Below, piece by piece: positions 5,919 through 46,773 of a DNA stretch of 64,000 bases. The stretch is taken from positions 62,001-126,000 of the forward strand of contig OZ287702.1 of assembly GCA_965649825.1 (NCBI GenBank). Direction: 5' to 3'. This DNA comes from Penicillus capitatus (lineage: Eukaryota > Plantae > Chlorophyta). Numbering within the stretch: position 1 is the first letter of the stretch; the number at the start of each line of letters is the position of its first letter. The notes beneath the pieces are model-generated. The model saw nothing but the letters and a program-made list of their open reading frames with translations, was not told the DNA's origin and did no database searches. A program made the position numbers and the translations under genes.

Positions 5919-6649
5919 ACGTGTCGTGCAGGCGTAACGAGATGGGTTTAGAAGCTAGCCGGCATGAAAAGAAACCGTCAAGTCAAGTGAACTTCGCATA
6001 GCGTACGCTTCTCGTGTTCGACGTCTTCGCAGGAACAAAACGCGAATCGATGTATTGACGCGTCGCCGAGCAAGACTTACAATCATTCATCGTGTGCATT
6101 TTTATCTCTCGACTACAGCGAGACAAGAGGCGGATAAAATGCGCTGGGAATCTGAAAAACGAGGTGAAAAAGCACGGGTCTTGGTTTCTCAGACGTTATG
6201 GCAGGTTTCGAATTATCGACTGCCTTTCTTGGAATGATGATACAGGTCGGATTCGAGGCACTTATATTTTGGGAACAGACGGCTTAAAGACTGGCCAGGC
6301 AAAGCAGACGTGGATGGACACCTTAACCGGCCTCTTCATCAATCAGAAGACGTCAGGTTGCGCGGTGACGAATCCCTTCGGTTCTCGACTCAATAATATC
6401 TTCAAATCGTATTGCGCTCTGCCACGACAGACACGCGGCAAATACCGACGACCGACAAACCGTTCCATCGACGTCAGACAGGCATACGAGACAGCGCGCC
6501 CGAAGCGGTTTCTGAGGCATCCACGCTCGATAGACTCACAAAATCACAGGTTCACAGCAATGGTGCAATTAGACACCACCCAAGACGCATGGCATCAGAC
6601 AGAAGCCCTAACCATAACGACGGCAAAATATCATGCCCGTGCTGTAGCG

Positions 6650-11093: not shown

Positions 11094-12365
11094 TTATGCT
11101 AGACGAGATTGCAGAGAAATCGCGAATTCTGCCATTTGAACTCATAATTTCTTCGACGACCAAACAGACGGCCAATCGCGAACTGAGAACTTCCAGTCTG
11201 TAGGCAGGATGTGTCGGCATGCTGAGCATTTCAGGAGATGATCTCTTGTCTCTGGCACGCGACCGCAAAAGCGGCAAAGAATTGAGTCTCCATCGGCGGT
11301 ATTGAGCAAATTAAACCTGTTGAGATAAACACGGGTTGCCAGGTGGCCTGTTAGGAATCTGCAGAGGGCTGTGAACTGTCTTCTGCTGTGTGCTTTCCAC
11401 CATTTCAACCGAGTCATCTTAACCTTGTCAAAGCACGTGGCTTTCAGAGAGCTTGCACGATCCGTCGATTCCCAAGCGATCTTCCCCTTCGAGTCTGCAA
11501 ATGATGAGGCTTCAAAACGCAGTAACTCGAAACCAGCTTGATCGCCGCCATTCATGGATTCTAGAGTGATCTTTTCCCATCTATCCAGTTTTTCTTGCGA
11601 CAGGAACTCTTCGTAACGGTTCCTGATGGGGAACAGCGGTGAGTCATAAGTTCCAGCCAATGCAGGACGAAGATCGTAGAAGGACAAATCTTCCAGTTTG
11701 ACCTTAGCAAGAAGAGAGTGTCGAGTGATTTCATCATCGGGGAGCCTTAGGCCCGCTAGGGCTAATACTGCTGCTGTTGATGTGGTGCGAAGATCCCCAG
11801 TGATGAGGAGGGCACCAGACCGAATGACCGACATCAAGGACTTCCTCTTCTGCGTTAGGGCTCTACTACCGGATGACCAGATCAGGGCTCCGTAGTAGAG
11901 GACTGGTGCAACGCATGCCTGGAACGGTGTACGCAGGACGCCAGGAGTGGCACCCCGTAAACTGTTGCTGATCCGTTTGATGGACTCCAGTCGTCGCTGT
12001 GCTTTCATGCAGACTCCCGAGACGTGAGCGCTGAAGTTTAGCTTGCTGTCCATTTTCAGCCCGAGGTAAGTGAATTGTGGTTCTTCTTGCAATAGGGAGC
12101 CGTCCAGATTCACTTGGATCGATGTGGCCTTTCGGAGTCTTGAGAAGCGTAATAGATGGCTTTTGCTGGCATTAAACTGCATTCCGTTGAGTGTTGCCCA
12201 CTGGACGGCCTTCTTCAAGGAGGACTCGAGATGTGCTTGGCCTTCGCCCCGTGGGCCAATCTGGCAGTATAGCAGACAGTCATCAGCGAATAGACAGCAT
12301 TTCACCTCAGGGGGAACTGAGTTTGCGAGGCTGTTGACAAAGCACAGCACAAAAGGGATGCCAAA
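11094..12365 (-). mobile_element. 5'-truncated non-LTR retrotransposon (LINE): RT C-terminal part plus CCHC finger
   Basis: A 402-aa intronless ORF carries LFADD (YADD-type catalytic motif), FTYLGLKMDSKLNFSAHV, PVLYYGALIW, CRFLTGH and CRFCGRVPETRDHLLKC. The endonuclease, ORF1 and RT N-terminus are absent. Confidence 0.9.
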
Positions 12366-18764: not shown

Positions 18765-20514
18765 ATGGGCGTTGATTGGAGTGCGCAGAATCAACAGATG
18801 CTAGACGAAATCGATAGAGACTTTCAAGAAGTGCGTCTCCCATTCCATACGACACTAGATCTTGCAGGGTTGACCGTCCACACTAATTTAGGCCAAATCC
18901 GAGACGATGGCCACGGGGGTTGGAATTCAATTGCTCAAGTTTGGCTACACCGACGCATCTCTGACCAATCTTGACTGGTCGTTCGTTTCGGCAAACGCTC
19001 TTCCCCGTTTCTACGACGCTAACGAGGATTCACCTTCAAAACCGACGACCAATTGGCGACTCGAGATTGAGGCCGGTGATATCGACGCGGAGGTGGCACA
19101 TAGTTTAGAACTGCTTGGAGATAGGCAAGCACAGAGGGTGACATTTCGCTGCGGCGACGCATGGGCTCTCAAATTTCCCAACGCCAAATCTTACATGCAT
19201 TTTTGGAATGACTACAACAACAAGCTCTTCGAAAACATCTACGGCGCAACGAACACTCAAGCCAATCGCGAGGAACACCTTGGACGCGATTTCGCCTCGA
19301 AACTCTTCACAGAAGATGAGAAGGAGGAAGACATGGATTGGCAAGAAGAAGTTATAGAAGATGACGTCAAGCAAGAAGATGCCAGACACGATACAAACGC
19401 AAAAGATCCTCTCGTGGGTGATAAAGACATTTCTCTGATCAAGCTGGGCATCGGTAACAAGAGCTACAGCGTCCGCGGGCAGAACGTTTCCGTACTGCAG
19501 AACATATCGTCTGGTGTGGAAGACACGGGACAGGATTTCACTCTGTGCAAACCAGACGGTACAGTGGTGAAGCCATCGGTCGTGATGCTTGCCGACTGTG
19601 AGCGGAAGATGGGCATGTTGCACGAAGGCGATGCGCATTCTCTGCTTTATGCAGATGTGGAATCTGGAAAAGTGGTGCAGGAATGTCGATTCAAGAAGGA
19701 CGATGTCGACATTCCGATGACAGAGATCGTGGCAGAGACCAAGAGTGCTCCTGCCGAAGATCGATCCACGTTCCTGAGTTACGATCGAAATCGATTGTGT
19801 CGATGGGATATGCGTGATCCAACAGGCATTGTGCAACAGCATGAACCGGCATTGGATTTTATTGGCGGCAAAGACTATGCTCAGTATACAAACTTTACAA
19901 GCATGGCGTCGACGGGAGATGGATCCGTAGTGGTGGGATCTGCCGATGGCAAGATTCGTTTGTACAGCAATAAACTCACGCTGAAACGTGCATCGACGGC
20001 CTTCCCAGGAATTGGGACACCTATTACACATATTGATGTGACGTATGATGGCAAATGGGTCATTGCAACAACCGATCACTTTATTGAGATTATCAAGACG
20101 ACGGCAAAAGATGCCGACGGAAAATCAGTAGAAGGGTATCGTAAATCCCTGGCATCGCTCGCCACTCGGCCGAAGCTTCTCAAACTGAAACCAGAGGACA
20201 CTATACGAACGGGCCATGCCCCTTTGAGGAAAGGCAGATTTACATTTGTGACTGAAGCCAGTCATCAAGAACGGTGGATCGTTGCCACCTGCGGAAGCTA
20301 TTCTGTTCTGTGGAACTTTCGTCAGGTGAAGATGATGACCAACGATCATCGTGCAAGTGGAGGATTGCCAACATGTGTGGCCTATCATTTGGTGTGCAAG
20401 GATGAACCTGTCGTCGATTCTTGTTTCTCGCATGAATCACGTCAATCTGGAAGCCAGTCGGAAGCTGCCTTAGTTGTGGCAACGCAGCACAAAGTGTGGT
20501 CGTTTTATGATTAG
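18765..20514 (+). CDS. VID27: VID27/CYPRO4-like protein (PH-like plus WD40-like domain)
   Basis: NRLCRWDMRDPTGIVQ, TNFTSMASTGDGSVVVGSADGKIRLYS and ASTAFPGIGTPITHIDVTYDGKWVIATTD are diagnostic. Confidence 0.9.
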
Positions 20515-27173: not shown

Positions 27174-27875
27174 TTACAGCTTGGTAGCCTGTGACAACGA
27201 TTGTGTAACAAAGTTGACCAGTGTGTTCTTTTTTTCTCCGTCGAGCTTTGGAATGACATGAGAGCCGGAGTGTTCCAAAACGATGGGACTGGCAAAGTAA
27301 TCGACGACTTTGCGACTGTAAGGCGTGACCTCATCTTGCTCTCCCATGATATGCAACGAAGGACAGTAAATGCTATCTCTGTATGCCGCTTGGAGATCGG
27401 GATCTCTGAAAAATACATCCATCCATGTCACAACCAAAGCACAACGGCATTCACACCTTGTTGGAAAGCCGCCAATGATGATGGCAAATTTGAAGGCGGG
27501 TAAATCCTGTAGATGTAGTCCTTGCTGCCGCATACCAGCCAGCAGAACCGCGCAGCATGCGCCTTGGGAGAATCCCAGGATGCCATCGAAAGGCCCTTCT
27601 TCTTTCATGAACTGCTCGACGTGAGTAACCGTTGCCTGCCAACCCCGGTAGTGCATCTTTCCGTCTTCTGCCTTATTTGCCTTCCACCAGGAGTGATAAG
27701 GCCCTTTGAAATAATCAGGCACGCGGTCAGGTCGTTCGACCGTGTGTGGGCCATCGAGTGTCTGTATCTGTACCCTGTCGTTCAGGATTGATCTTAACGT
27801 CGATTTTTCCAGTTGCATATCGAGAAAAGCGGCGTTGGTGCCGAAGCCATGTAAGGCCAATATTTTCGCGGACAT
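27174..27875 (-). CDS. FSH1/OVCA2-family serine hydrolase
   Basis: KILALHGFGTN, PFDGILGFSQGA, SLHIMGEQD and EHSGSHVIP. Confidence 0.9.
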   Translation of the reverse strand: MSAKILALHGFGTNAAFLDMQLEKSTLRSILNDRVQIQTLDGPHTVERPDRVPDYFKGPYHSWWKANKAEDGKMHYRGWQATVTHVEQFMKEEGPFDGILGFSQGACCAVLLAGMRQQGLHLQDLPAFKFAIIIGGFPTRCECRCALVVTWMDVFFRDPDLQAAYRDSIYCPSLHIMGEQDEVTPYSRKVVDYFASPIVLEHSGSHVIPKLDGEKKNTLVNFVTQSLSQATKL

Positions 27876-27895: not shown

Positions 27896-29665
27896 ATGCT
27901 GCTACAAATTCGACGTCCGTTTCGATGTCCTCACTGTCCCACTCTCCTTCCTTCGCCACCCGTCGGTTCACTCGTGAAGGGACGCCAGTTAGTCCATGAT
28001 CGGTGTGGTGCACATCGGGGTTACCGATCTGTTCGATGCCTGCGTGCGGTCAACGATGATGACGTCGATCTCAAACGACTCCTCGCCGCGTTTACTTTTG
28101 AGGAGCAGCGAGGTTACACAAATGCCGAAGTGCTTCTCACGTCATCCATCGAGGCGCTATGAGACGAAGTGTATTGAACCCAGGGCAGACGTGAAGTGTT
28201 CTCAACATTTGCATCGCGTTCCGTGAAATCGTTGGAAGATATTCCGGCGAAGCTCCGTCGACAGCACCGTCAGATTTCGATTGCTCTCGAACACTATGCA
28301 TCGTTGGATCACAAGACCCGAATGGCGACCGTCCATTCTGGCAGAGATCTGGTGACGGAGCTGGAATCGTGGTCATCCGTCAACCAGATATCTCCCCATG
28401 CCCAGGCCACATTTTCTCAAAGAGGTAATCCGTCTTGAGGCATCGGGATGCTGACTGCGATCGCCTCAGGTGGTGTTCTCTCGTTTAGAGATAACATTCG
28501 ATGGGTAGGTACCCCTCCAGAAAGGTGCGTTCGCTGTTGAAACAGGCATTGGAATGCAGGTATCCTTAGACGAGAGGACGTCGGAAGTGCCAGATAAGGA
28601 GTCAGCTTTGAAGCAACAGTGAGAACTGGACATTCTATACGCAAGCCAAGAAGGAAGGTGTTGTTTTTGGCACAGGGAAGCGTCAAAGCGAGAGATATCA
28701 CGCGCATCTTTTGCCGAGAGCGCATCCAGTAATGTGCAAAATGAAGAGATGAGTGAAGAGGAGCTCGCAGAGATGGAACAGGGATCAGATGCGTGGATGG
28801 CGTTTCGCAAATCTCGCCTCACTGCGAGTTTCGTCTCCAACATCTTGGGAATGTTTGGCAGCAGGAAGCAGTGCATCCGTGATGCCTGGCTCGAGAAGAT
28901 CGGACTGAAGAAGCCTTTTGAAGGTAGCTGATGTGACAGCGACACCCCCATTCAGCAGACTGCCCATCAGGGAATGCTTTGACAAGGTGGGGAAACGCAA
29001 AAGAGAGAACAGCACTGGACATGTATCGAGCGATATCTGGCCATCATGTCGAGAAACATGGGTTTGCTTTGATGGGTCCGCACGCAGCAGAGACATGGAT
29101 AGGTGGATCACCTGACGGGATCATCAAACTCAACGACCCGTCCAGTACAACACAGATGCCATCCACAGAGGCGCAGCATATCCTCACGCCTTGTTCGTCG
29201 ACGGGATTGTTGGAGATTAAGTGCCCAGCGAAAAATGGAAGTGGAGACCCGCAAAATGCCATGCTCTATGATAGTCTGCCTTTCTATTACGTCCCACAGG
29301 TTTCGATGGATGATCGAGTGCGACGGCAATGGTGGTGGTGTCTTCTCTAGGTGCAGTGTTTGATGGAACTGCTGGATCTCGAATGGACACATCTTTATGT
29401 TTGGACAGCCAAGAATGGCTCCAGGATTTTTTTCATGCCGCGTGACAAGCAGTATTTTCTCGCCCTCTATCACTACATGGCCACTTTTTGGTGGAACCAC
29501 GTCATTCCTGCCAAAAGCAGCTTGGAAAACGCAAATGGTGAAGCAGATTACATGCAATATGCGCCGAATGATCTTGACCCCACACATCTGATACAGGAAA
29601 GTCGACAGTTGGCTGCAAAGGCGCCACAGTTAACCTTTGATTCCATGGGCCAATGCATACCATAG
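27896..29665 (+). CDS. Transit peptide plus cyanobacterial RecG-N-like domain plus YqaJ/lambda-exonuclease domain
   Basis: YqaJ motifs: EQGSDAWMAFRKSRLTAS, WGNAKE, IGGSPDGII, LEIKCP and YYVPQV/QCLM. Upstream exons encode DLKRLLAAFTFEEQRGYTNAE/GRREVFSTF...HYASLDHKTRM. All exons can be joined in frame with GT-AG introns. Confidence 0.75.
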
Positions 29666-29692: not shown

Positions 29693-30136
29693 TTAAGAGG
29701 CGAGAGCGTTTATCAATTCTTCATGGTGCTTGTTGACGACGAGATCGACAACGGGATGCAAATCGGGAACGCTCGAGATGTTACCCAGGCTAAACCAACG
29801 ATACTCCACATGTTCATCGTTGAGAATTGGCACGAAATTTTTCTTGTCTTCAGGCGAAATCTCGACGACGAAAACCGTAAAGAGTTTGTCGAGTCTTTTT
29901 CCACGGATCGTTCGGATTTCGCCTTTGACGGTATAGTTGGGCATGTCTTGTCCGAGTTCCTCTCTCGCTTCTCTCAACGCTCCCTCAATGGCTTCCTCAT
30001 TTTCTTCGAGGTTTCCGCCGGGTATTCCCCACGTGAAGGGATTTCCTGAGTCTTCTCCACGCAACAGCAGGAGCACTTCGCCGTCGGAGACAGTGAAGAA
30101 GCCGGCACCTATTTTAGAGTACTGATCCGACGACAT
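29693..30136 (-). CDS. NUDIX hydrolase, intronless
   Basis: Nudix box WGIPGGNLEENEEAIEGALREAREELG, and LNDEHVEYRWF. Confidence 0.9.
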   Translation of the reverse strand: MSSDQYSKIGAGFFTVSDGEVLLLLRGEDSGNPFTWGIPGGNLEENEEAIEGALREAREELGQDMPNYTVKGEIRTIRGKRLDKLFTVFVVEISPEDKKNFVPILNDEHVEYRWFSLGNISSVPDLHPVVDLVVNKHHEELINALAS

Positions 30137-38768: not shown

Positions 38769-41700
38769 ATGGGCGTCCCTGCTTTCTACCGTTGGCTCAG
38801 TTCCAGGTACGTCGAGCGTTACGCCCACTTTTTCCGTCTCTGCGGAATCTACTCATTAAACACGGCCAGCGTCTTGACATGTGACCCCGAGCAGGTATCC
38901 GAAATGTGTCGTCTTGCTAGAGGAACAGGAGCCGGCTGTGGTGGACGGCATCGAAATTCCAATTGACTGCACTCAGGAGAGTCCAAACGGCCATGTGGAC
39001 AATCTCTATCTGGTTTACCTCTATCATCCATCAAAATCTCGCGTTTACGGATGTCTCGTGAGCAGGACATGAATGGCATCATCCATCCATGTTTCCATCC
39101 AGAAGACAAAGTAGAGTGAGAAAGTGTGATGTCGGATGTGATGGTGTGTGTGAGTGAACAGGCGGCGCCATTGACATTTGAACAGTGCTTTAAAGATATC
39201 TTTGCCTATATTGATCGTATCATGGCTATTGTCCGTCCCCGAAAGCTGCTTTTCATGGCGATTGGTATGTTTTCTCTTTCTTTGAGCAACGGATGAGATA
39301 GATGCATATGTAGATGGTGTGGCACCACGCGCCAAGATGAACCAGCAACGCTCCAGGAGATTCAAATCGGCGAAAGATGCACAAGACAAGGTGCTGCTGG
39401 TCTAAATGTAGCGCATCGTGGAGGAACGTTGTTTTGTGTGACAGTTAACAGAGGAGAAGCGTATTCGTGCGGAGCTACAGGCACAGGGAATGAAAGTCCG
39501 CGATGCAAAAGGCATTTCCGAGACATCTGCCCTGGGAGACAGCAATATCATCACCCCAGGCACTGCTTTCATGGCTAAGCTCTCTATTGCACTACAGTAT
39601 TACATCCATCAACGTATCAATACGCAACCTGCATGGAAGCCCCTTACAGTATGTACTGTCGGCATATGTGGTCTGAACACGCGTCATGTGTATCAATCAG
39701 GTAATGCTTTCCGATGCGAATGCTCCTGGAGAAGGGGAACACAAGATCATGGAGTACATTCGTGAGCAGAGGGGTCGTCCAGGATGGCAGCCCAATATGA
39801 CCCATGTGGTTTCTGGCTTGGACGCAGATTTGATTCATTTGGCCCTGGCAACACACGAGCCACATTTTCATATCTTGCGTGAAGTCGTCTTTGGTCCTTC
39901 AGCAGGAGATGCTCCGGAAGGAGGAGCCAAGCCCAAAGTTCCTTATCAGTACCTCAAGATCTCTCTTCTTAGGGATTATCTGGAATTGGAGTTTAATGAC
40001 GTGCGATTGCCTTTTCACTTTGATAAAGAGCGGATCTATGATGATTTCGTTTTCCTGTGTTTCTTTGTGGGAAATGACTTTCTTCCCCACTCACCAACGC
40101 TTGAGATTCGTGAAGGAGGAATTGATTTGCTGATGACGATCTATAAACGTCAGTTACCTTTTTTGGGAGGCTGGCTCTGCGATGGAGCCACAGTACATCT
40201 CAGACGTGTGGAAGTGATCATCCGTGAAGTGGCCAGATGCGAAGAGCGGATATTACAGAAAAGAATGCGTATTATGAAGAATCAAGAGTCCAAAAGGTAC
40301 GAACACACAAGTGTCGATCTCTCTGTTGCTCAATGCTATCTTTCAGAAATTCTGCTGTGAAACGGCCGATGAGTGTGGATACAGTAACACCTCCACCACG
40401 AGTTCCAATCACTACCGATCCAGCCTTAGAGTCTTGCAAAGGCACTCCGAAGAAGCAAAGAACAGAAGAAGAAGAGAGTGCCCGTGGTAATGTCAAATAT
40501 CTGTGTACAGAATCGAACCTCACTCTTCTGCTTTGCTGACAGACAGCTTTCTCGAAATCGATGCGAGCACTGAGCAAGCAACACCTGTCAATCCTCGAAA
40601 AATCTGGGACGATCTGATGTCTGTCAGTCCAGCTGAAAAGGCAGAGAATATCGTAAGTGTTTCCTTCCATCCATTTTGCGGCAAACTGTATGATCTGTTG
40701 GCAGCTGCCCGAGGAGCCCAAGAGTGATTCGGACGAAGAGATCAATGAAATTGAAGTGATGGTTCAGACGCGGTTAAAGAACTCGGCACATGAAAAGGCT
40801 GACATGTTTGACTCTATGGTCCAACATGGAGAAGCTATTGGATATGGAATGCGAGGATGGAAGGAGCGCTATTACCGAATGAAAATCCCAGATGTACCGG
40901 AGAAACAAAGAATAGAAGTGGTGAAAGACATGGTGGAGAAGTTTGTGGAGGGACTGATGTGGGTGATGGCCTATTACTATGAAGGAGTGGCCTCGTGGAC
41001 ATGGTACTATCCCTACCACTATGCTCCATTCGCCTCAGACATGGTCAAAATCGCGCACATTCGACCCAGTTTCCAGCTGGGAGAGCCTTTCCTTCCCGTC
41101 AACCAACTCATGGCCGTTCTCCCAGCTGCCAGTCGATTCTGCCTCCCTCAAGTAATAGACAGAACATGCTGAGGAGACGAGACAAACGCATTGTCTGTAT
41201 GGCAGTGTCTGCAACACTTGTTTGTCGACCATGACTCTCCAATCATCGATTTCTATCCTGAAAACTTCAAGTGTGATATGAACGGAAAGAGATTCTCTTG
41301 GCAGGCCGTTGTCTTGCTGCCCTTCATTGATGAAGAGAGATTGATCAATACAACCAAGTGCGTTGCGTTCATCTGCTTAGCTTCCTTGTAGCTTCTTTGC
41401 TGTGTCAGGAAGTACTTTGGTGAATTTACGGAAGAAGAGAAAGAAAGGAACAAGAGAAAACTGACGCAGTTCTATGTTGGCGAGCAGCATCCACTGACGG
41501 AATATATAAAGAGCGGAGCGTCGTTTGACAATGCTACAAAGGTTGTCAAACTGCAGCTCGATCCAGAGAAAAGCTCTGGACTCAATGGACATCTATGTGT
41601 GACGGAAGATTATTGTCCCGAAACTCTTCCTGCTCCTTTTGACTTAGGAGAAGATATTACACAGAATCGTGTCATTATGGGATCTTTCCTCAATCCTCCT

Positions 41701-46288: not shown

Positions 46289-46547
46289 TGGTGATGTAGG
46301 GTCGGGAATGATGTCTGGAGGTTCGGATCGCTCCAAGCAAGTCTAGCCATGGCGGTCAAACGTTGGCGGATTTGAGGGGCGGGGTCAGTTTCAAGAGCAA
46401 TAAAGTCTTTACTCCGTAGCTTGATTGATCGCTTTTCATTTCGTTCATCAATCAAAGTGACCGAACTTTGCCCATTGCTTTGATTGGCTGTTGTCCTGAA
46501 AATTGTATGAACGGTGCGCGCACCGCGCAATAAAAGAAAGTAAAGGA

Positions 46548-46621
46548 TGCCTCTTCAGAGAGTCGAACTCTGGACCTCTCGCTTACAAGGCGAGCGCTCT
46601 AACCAACTGAGCTAAAAAGGC
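46548..46621 (-). tRNA. tRNA-Thr: tRNA-Thr(UGU), intronless
   Basis: GCCTTTTTAGCTCAGTTGGTTAGAGCGCTCGCCTTGTAAGCGAGAGGTCCAGAGTTCGACTCTCTGAAGAGGCA folds into a full cloverleaf with anticodon TGT and A/B boxes. A T-rich Pol III terminator follows. Confidence 0.97.
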
Positions 46622-46773
46622 ATTCGTCCCATCATTCCATTGATCGCATATCTGTTAGCTCAAAGCAACTGCTCAGGAAATGTGTAACTCACGTTTACAA
46701 GACAATGACGCCGACAAAACAACAACGATCTCCGCGTTCTTTCGAAAAGAAGAAGCATGTAAGGGTTCTCTCT

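Follow-up and report, generated by a model that had tools for sequence, protein, structure and literature searches.

A putative organelle-directed protein of Penicillus capitatus joins a cyanobacterial RecG-type helical domain to a YqaJ/lambda-type exonuclease

A 64,000-nucleotide stretch of DNA from the green alga Penicillus capitatus (contig OZ287702.1, positions 62,001 to 126,000 of the forward strand; hereafter the window, whose own numbering is used throughout) carries at 27896-29665 a gene model that joins two domains known from bacterial and phage recombination proteins. Our preferred reading, to which we attach a probability of roughly 60 %, is that this is a single nuclear gene whose product comprises an organelle presequence, a helical domain of the type found in RecG and SF1B helicases, a flexible linker and a YqaJ nuclease that would resect organellar DNA ends, with the helical domain serving as an adaptor. 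We infer where the protein acts, on what substrate and with what polarity its nuclease works, and that its helical domain serves as an adaptor; comparison with related loci strongly favours the view that 27896-29665 is one gene encoding one fused protein.

Results

One gene, one fused protein

The peptides quoted in the original prediction, which had been made from this DNA alone, were all found in the frames and at the positions given there, and the single spliceable frame that it proposed corresponds to a coding sequence (CDS) of seven exons and 486 amino acids (aa; Table 1). The splice path for 28425-28740, absent from that prediction, was derived here. Two contigs of a close relative (L001 and L002) were reached via the one close database match to the N-terminal half, an unspliced exon-1 open reading frame (ORF) of that relative. 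The two contigs differ from each other by scattered single bases, for example TELKSW versus TELESW (Lys/Glu aligned with window Glu139), a pattern that fits two haplotypes of a diploid.

The gene order abhydrolase, FSH1, fusion gene, NUDIX is kept in L001/L002, DNA identity across the locus is ~85 % and the orthologous CDS is open in both contigs, giving 486 aa by explicit exon coordinates and 485 aa when read through alignment columns. The donors and acceptors of introns 1, 2, 4, 5 and 6 are all conserved in the relative, with indels of 2, 2, 2 and 6+1 nt in introns and 3 nt in exons, and the ratio of non-synonymous to synonymous substitution rates (dN/dS) over the whole CDS is 0.25. Intron 3 (window 28505-28559; L001 around 6600-6610) is missing from both haplotypes of the relative with the frame preserved; a difference of exactly these 55 nt would be expected if a spliced intron had been lost or gained, and it supports transcription and splicing of the interdomain stretch. 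Quite apart from the gene model, intron 3 documents cleanly that an intron was recently lost or gained between close relatives. An acceptor at 28729, implying a 111-nt intron, would also leave the frame open but its CCAG is CCAT in the relative, and the conserved acceptor at 28675 was preferred.

The 24 codons of exon 5 that precede the internal Met215 show seven synonymous and two non-synonymous changes between the window and the relative (P = 6e-4 for at least seven of nine changes being synonymous under neutrality), and exon 5 has no in-frame ATG upstream of Met215. Such strong purifying selection implies that the stretch is translated, and hence that an upstream exon is required.

Two further homologous loci share this layout. 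At L124, where the nuclease is 44 % identical to that of the window, the codon position of intron 1 is likewise interrupted by an intron in the N-domain; between the end of the N-domain and a nuclease encoded by one uninterrupted exon lies a single 46-nt intron (donor GTAAGT), whose removal leaves the two in frame. Read as separate ORFs, the N-domain and nuclease parts overlap by 8 nt. At L205, a single strand carries N-domain exons, linker and nuclease exons within a span of 1.5 kb, the introns after PF(E/Q)G and YYxPQ are common with the window, and the segment corresponding to that before Met215 is similar, with no Met at the Met215 position. Words resembling a poly(A) signal were not found at the interdomain junction of the window, which is weak evidence.

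Homology of the N-terminal domain with cyanobacterial RecG N-termini

The N-terminal domain (DLKRLLAAFTFEEQRGYTNAE, the intron at 28130-28183, then GRREVFSTFASRS...LEHYASLDHKTRMATVHSGRDLV) is, by profile comparison, homologous to the N-terminus of cyanobacterial RecG, as the original prediction had proposed. Positions 7-103 of NCBIfam NF008170, an 826-residue RecG model, match aa 55-149 (E 2.7e-8), the same model also matches 22 of 25 family members individually (best E 5.4e-10), and hhalign of the algal domains against cyanobacterial RecG N-termini gave 99.6 % probability and E 2.8e-24 over 95 columns. AlphaFold2 (AF2), run with the family alignment, predicts with confidence a domain of four helices that includes a conserved hairpin loop (predicted local distance difference test score, pLDDT, 92.7).

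A degenerate DNA motif scan for AL..E...G(F/Y).N..G....F, covering one genome per bacterial or archaeal species, found at least 120 loci, overwhelmingly cyanobacterial. Among the matches listed there are 121 motif-bearing ORFs, and in 84 of them, these being cyanobacterial, a hidden Markov model (HMM) of the algal domain matches essentially all 71 positions (E 1e-9 to 1e-22); strict RecG helicase motifs are present in 58 of the 84, and the rest are mostly truncated RecG genes. A further 32 of the 121 gave zero HMM match and act as an internal control, whilst in a few more motif-bearing ORFs the HMM match is weak (E ~1e-4 at best) and confined to the motif end of the model, as is any non-cyanobacterial match. 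The domain lies at residues ~10-100 of cyanobacterial RecG ORFs of ~820 aa. The consensus recovered from these genes, PDWxRLQKALxVEAERGFxNLQGxQxxFxEFL...FxxYxxLxxxxRQxLVAxTRRFL, is essentially the motif beginning DWxRLQKAL that the original prediction had given.

No Pfam model matches the helical domain, either in the window protein or in the first 130 residues of a RecG ORF in which RecG_wedge, DEAD, Helicase_C and RecG_dom3_C were all recognised, and sequence searches of the PDB with the N-domain returned no match. The window protein scores 32 bits against the NF008170 cutoff of 975 for a RecG equivalog, and neither RecG_wedge nor DEAD nor Helicase_C was found in its Pfam scan. With cyanobacterial RecG (NF008170, ~820 aa) it shares the homologous N-terminal domain of ~95 residues (AL..E...G(F/Y).N..G....F ... 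F..Y..L....R..(L)V), but it lacks the wedge domain, the helicase lobes and RecG domain 3 and is not a RecG. Plant organellar RECG1 (Arabidopsis At2g01440, Physcomitrium RECG) is an organelle-targeted, bacterial-type recombination factor with a long N-terminal extension (PMC4358946), a description that the window protein may share; plant RECG1 is a helicase, whereas the window protein is a predicted nuclease.

Large SF1B helicases of cyanobacteria (AAA_11/AAA_12) have the same helical domain inserted mid-protein, as seen in L037 (Aetokthonos hydrillicola), L056 and L076 (Okeania, Microcoleaceae), which makes it a mobile module rather than one restricted to RecG. The proposal that a RecG accessory domain had been shuffled onto an exonuclease holds as regards the homology; given this wider occurrence, RecG need not have been the donor. 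In a further cyanobacterial ORF (L092, containing position 2346) the helical domain stands ahead of pentapeptide repeats.

The C-terminal half is a complete lambda-exonuclease-type nuclease

The linker contains an acidic stretch (NEEMSEEELAEMEQ), and in the full-length AF2 model part of the linker (aa 147-180) is disordered. The nuclease, modelled at a pLDDT of ~90 or more, is preceded by a predicted helix at aa 183-213. Judged by its sequence, the C-terminal half is a complete lambda-exonuclease-type nuclease with intact catalytic residues, in agreement with the earlier assignment to the YqaJ PD-(D/E)xK enzymes: Pfam PF09588 scores 62.8 bits (E 6e-17; gathering threshold 22) and is covered from position 2 to position 144 of its 150, the Asp, Glu, Lys and Gln ligand and motif positions are present, and the AF2 model has the lambda-exonuclease fold. 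Gln382 and Gln384 are invariant or nearly so in the family, and this QxQ aligns with that of LHK-Exo. Searched against the PDB, the family profile matched 3SYY (LHK-Exo) at 9e-16, mimivirus R354 at 1.6e-13 and lambda exonuclease at 6e-10; Foldseek of the model found 3SYY at E 6e-8 with a template-modelling (TM) score of 0.76, and 1AVQ at TM 0.61-0.66, the matches to lambda exonuclease as a whole reaching 0.68.

The window protein thus has in common with lambda exonuclease and LHK-Exo (1AVQ, 3SYY) the fold, the Asp / Glu-x-Lys and QxQ motifs and an N-terminal W...R..(L/I)TAS segment. It differs from them in being eukaryotic, nuclear-encoded and intron-split, and in adding the presequence, the four-helix domain and a C-terminal extension, RDxxYW...FWWxHVxPA, beyond the Pfam domain; nor is a partner gene of the Red-beta/RecT type adjacent to the window gene, as distinct from the lambda system. 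Mimivirus R354 (PDB 5YET, the Cas4-like nuclease of MIMIVIRE) is the best single-sequence PDB match and has the nuclease core in common, but R354 is viral, carries other accessory regions and no RecG-type domain, and its identity in Foldseek alignments is ~20-24 %. By analogy, a Mg-dependent 5'-3' exonuclease acting on double-stranded ends would be expected.

An old green-lineage family

With the 486-aa protein as query, unindexed HMMER recovered 1278 homologues (E <=1e-3); word-indexed searching gave no match at this threshold for either the fused protein or the N-domain alignment. Four of the homologues (P0004, P0008, P0044 and P0054) align across both halves in one stretch, and in ~40 of the best 150 the N-domain HMM finds its domain ahead of the nuclease. 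Named two-domain members come from Picochlorum, Bryopsis, Micromonas, Pseudoscourfieldia/Pycnococcus and Coleochaete scutata, so the fusion that the original prediction suggested looking for in other chlorophytes does occur there. The Coleochaete scutata sequence is a Trinity transcript and constitutes direct evidence of one mRNA in that streptophyte alga.

Land-plant members (Riccia, Welwitschia, Amborella, Colocasia, Eleusine) consist of the nuclease alone behind a transit-peptide-like extension. They belong to the same nuclease family as the window protein (E 1e-33 to 1e-45, 35-40 % identity) and have the same C-terminal extension, but the domain HMM gives no match in those sampled, which are thus without the RecG-type helical domain. 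Prasinophyte (Mamiellophyceae-like) members add a C-terminal uracil-DNA glycosylase domain, and in another member a HIRAN domain stands at the N-terminus in place of the RecG-type domain; P0012 (790 aa) and P0126 (487 aa) are examples of members with such added uracil-DNA glycosylase or HIRAN layouts. In a neighbour-joining tree of the nuclease domain, the window protein and L124 sit on their own long branch.

At least 546 viral contigs, some of them giant-virus metagenome-assembled genomes, encode relatives with WLGASPDG and GxLExKCP at 28-34 % identity, compared with 33-44 % within the plant and algal family. The earlier label 'phage-type' is apt given these viral relatives, though the plant and algal proteins form a family of their own with a conserved C-terminal extension.

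All sources carry the family members as hypothetical or 'YqaJ domain-containing' proteins. We presume that At1g67660 and At1g13810, each called a 'phage-related exonuclease', are land-plant YqaJ members of this family. In tomato, the stromal proteome of the chloroplast includes a 'phage-related exonuclease' entry assigned to At1g67660 (PMC10493611); beyond that listing, our literature search found no paper on the plant and algal family. The suggestion of an undescribed factor stands as far as that search goes, but the fusion is old in the green lineage and its members were already in databases as hypothetical proteins. The window gene, a divergent member of this old family, did not arise as an innovation of its own lineage; the novelty lies in recognising the two-domain architecture and a helical module in common with cyanobacterial helicases.

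The presequence

The presequence of the window protein has 10 Arg+Lys and a single acidic residue and evolves at a dN/dS of 0.30. Across the window, L001 and L124, the first 45-52 residues hold 9-12 basic and 0-2 acidic residues, with (C/V)(L/V)R(A/T)V as the last residues of all three presequences ahead of the helical domain. In the AF2 model aa 1-53 are disordered (pLDDT <40). This basic, acid-poor extension suggests an organellar presequence. The plastid targeting put forward in the original prediction is suggested by this extension, present in all three sequences, and by the tomato stromal entry assigned to At1g67660, presumably a relative (PMC10493611), but plastid and mitochondrion are indistinguishable on these features, and a mitochondrial or dual location is equally possible.

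Weighing the alternatives

Several results weigh against our preferred reading. The linker (aa 159-190, exons 3-4) evolves nearly neutrally, at a dN/dS of 0.86, and an in-frame TGA at 28436-28438 lies 12 nt into intron 2, the retention of which would yield a separate 162-aa protein. The nuclease falls narrowly short of NCBIfam TIGR03033 (phage_rel_nuc, a subfamily-domain model; 61.2 bits against a cutoff of 68.05). Fold searches of the N-domain against the PDB and viral models returned generic helical bundles only (E >0.5), leaving the binding partner a guess and making a link to the N-terminal domain of Thermotoga RecG not demonstrable. The N-terminal extension of cyanobacterial RecG is noted, with no function given, in PMC7889586, and the same paper cites a report that an N-terminal extension of Aquifex RecG, possibly unrelated to the algal domain, is dispensable for helicase activity. 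Lastly, the presequence does not separate plastid from mitochondrion.

The stop in intron 2 is also one of the arguments for two separate genes, the one encoding a presequence and helical-domain protein that ends at 28436-28438, the other a YqaJ nuclease that starts from the ATG at 28749 (Met215) or that at 28448. A typical YqaJ N-terminus directly follows Met215, the ATG at 28448 is in frame with exon 3, and prokaryote-style gene callers divide the locus. We nevertheless consider such a split very unlikely: the relative has ATA in place of ATG 28448, which lies within intron 2, the presumed C-terminus and stop at 28436 are displaced in L001 by a 2-nt indel, the codons ahead of Met215 are constrained (dN/dS 0.05) and contain no in-frame ATG in exon 5, and the L205 protein has no Met at that position. 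At L124 a 46-nt intron with a consensus donor brings the halves, which overlap by 8 nt as ORFs, into one frame, intron 3 is precisely missing in L001, and both domains occur together in ~40 homologues, the Coleochaete Trinity transcript included. Hardly any weight attaches to the idea that the RecG similarity of the N-terminal half is a chance match of helical, compositionally alike segments. Identity is merely ~20 %, there is neither a Pfam family nor a structural match, and the cyanobacterial sequences were selected by a motif derived from the algal family; the NF008170 match, however, is independent of that selection and recurs in 22 of 25 members (best E 5.4e-10), the HMM matches span all 71 positions, beyond the 20-residue motif, with the 32 non-matching ORFs as a control, a distal F..Y..L....R..LV block is common to both groups, and the hhalign E is 2.8e-24.

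Two other alternatives accept the fused protein, or at least its nuclease, and place its action elsewhere. The nuclease might be a domesticated viral or transposon gene that acts in the nucleus or cytosol, in antiviral defence like R354 or in transposition, rather than in the maintenance of organelle DNA; the viral contigs (at least 546) whose relatives share WLGASPDG and GxLExKCP, and the presence of mimivirus R354 among the best PDB matches, would agree with this, as would published mentions of YqaJ domains alongside eukaryotic transposons. We think it improbable, given that the gene keeps its syntenic position between abhydrolase/FSH1 and NUDIX in the relative, is under purifying selection with conserved intron positions, is less similar to viral copies (28-34 %) than to the plant and algal family (33-44 %) and encodes a presequence and a cyanobacterial helicase-associated domain, and that neither transposase nor repeats adjoin it. 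An exclusively mitochondrial location of a genuine fused protein is doubtful to a lesser degree. The presequences of the window and L001 are Arg-rich and Ser/Thr-poor, as typical of mitochondrial as of green-algal chloroplast presequences, and plant RECG has been reported in both plastids and mitochondria (PMC4358946); the cyanobacterial type of the helical domain, the Ser/Thr-rich presequence of L124 and the tomato chloroplast stromal entry assigned to At1g67660 speak against it, none being decisive.

Gene structure and locus

Between the seven exons lie six introns, all GT..AG and 45-57 nt long. Were intron 2 retained, four codons would be added before the stop at 28436-28438, giving a stand-alone 162-aa protein of presequence plus N-domain; alternative splicing is conceivable. 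The gene lies head to head with an FSH1-type serine hydrolase and tail to tail with a NUDIX hydrolase, at spacings (20 and 27 nt) so extreme that the transcripts must overlap. The window as a whole has ~50 % G+C and very short introns, the picture of a compact eukaryotic genome. It also contains a reverse-transcriptase fragment at 11142-12350 (-), a VID27 gene at 18907-20514 (+), which likewise adjoins the orthologue in L124, an exon of an XRN 5'-3' exoribonuclease at 39686-40360 (+) and a single tRNA, tRNA-Thr(TGT), at 46545-46622 (-); no rRNA was found in the window.

Table 1. Positions, in window coordinates, of the fusion gene, its parts and its neighbours.
Feature	Position	Strand	Remarks
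Whole gene, ATG 27896 to stop 29663-29665	27896..29665	+	7 exons, 486-aa product; spliced CDS 1461 nt, open
Presequence, aa 1-52, putative organelle transit peptide	27896..28051	+	ends ...RGYRSVRCLRAV
Four-helix domain, cyanobacterial RecG N-terminal type, aa 53-158	28052..28423	+	spans intron 1; NF008170, hhalign, AF2
First 24 codons of exon 5, upstream of internal Met215	28676..28748	+	dN/dS 0.05
YqaJ/lambda-exonuclease domain and family-specific C-terminal extension, aa 215-486	28749..29662	+	spans introns 5 and 6; PF09588
Codon of Asp321 (SPDG), predicted catalytic metal ligand	29114..29116	+	invariant in alignments A3 and A4; aligns with SPDG of LHK-Exo
Codons Glu354-Ile-Lys356, ExK of PD-(D/E)xK motif (LEIKCP)	29213..29221	+	invariant in A3 and A4; aligns with EIK of LHK-Exo
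Codon of Gln382, first Gln of QxQ (YYVPQVQ)	29297..29299	+	invariant in A3 and A4
Exon 1	27896-28129	+	
Intron 1, 54 nt, phase 0	28130-28183	+	GT..AG kept in L001 (52 nt); same codon position in L124 (45 nt)
Exon 2	28184-28424	+	
Intron 2, 45 nt, phase 1	28425-28469	+	GT..AG kept in L001 (47 nt)
Exon 3, linker	28470-28504	+	open in window and L001
Intron 3, 55 nt, phase 0	28505-28559	+	L001 and L002 lack exactly these 55 nt
Exon 4, linker	28560-28618	+	3-nt indel, stop-free, fast evolving
Intron 4, 57 nt, phase 2	28619-28675	+	donor GTGAGA, acceptor CAG/TAG kept in L001 (57 nt)
Exon 5	28676-28923	+	
Intron 5, 47 nt, phase 1	28924-28970	+	kept in L001 (45 nt); L205 same position after PF[EQ]G
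Exon 6	28971-29299	+	
Intron 6, 51 nt, phase 0	29300-29350	+	kept in L001 (56 nt); L205 same position after YYxPQ
Exon 7	29351-29665	+	
FSH1-type serine hydrolase	27174-27875	-	start codon 20 nt from start of fusion gene, head to head
NUDIX hydrolase	29693-30136	-	stop 27 nt from stop of fusion gene, tail to tail

Discussion

Plastids and plant mitochondria recombine DNA efficiently, and to our knowledge the nuclease that resects organellar DNA ends for RecA loading has not been firmly identified. In the mechanism that we propose, the presequence would direct import into a DNA-containing organelle, be it the plastid, the mitochondrion or both, where the nuclease would digest the 5' strand at double-stranded DNA ends or nicks and expose single-stranded 3' tails on which organellar RecA or annealing proteins could act. 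As an adaptor, the helical domain would bring the nuclease to the partner protein or branched DNA that the same module may serve in cyanobacterial helicases. HIRAN is a known reader of DNA ends and forks, and its occurrence in the same slot, together with the uracil-DNA glycosylase of other members, fits a DNA-repair nuclease with an exchangeable targeting module.

More tentatively, and as a possibility that we hold to be less probable than not, the four-helix module may be an adaptor of cyanobacterial and plastid genome maintenance that docks RecG, an SF1B helicase and the algal exonuclease on a common partner or DNA structure, in which case the fusion could be the nuclease, long sought, whose resection of ends initiates homologous recombination in chloroplasts, mitochondria or both.

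The apparently organelle-directed family, which ranges across green algae from prasinophytes to the streptophyte lineage and also reaches land plants, there lacking the extra domain, provides a concrete candidate for the resection nuclease that is testable in laboratory algae, to which the window gene adds one more, rather divergent, member together with a clean comparative data set for the gene model. Its helical module is a conserved domain without a Pfam match that links cyanobacterial RecG, SF1B helicases and an algal nuclease, and the binding partner of this module, once found, would explain the extension of cyanobacterial RecG.

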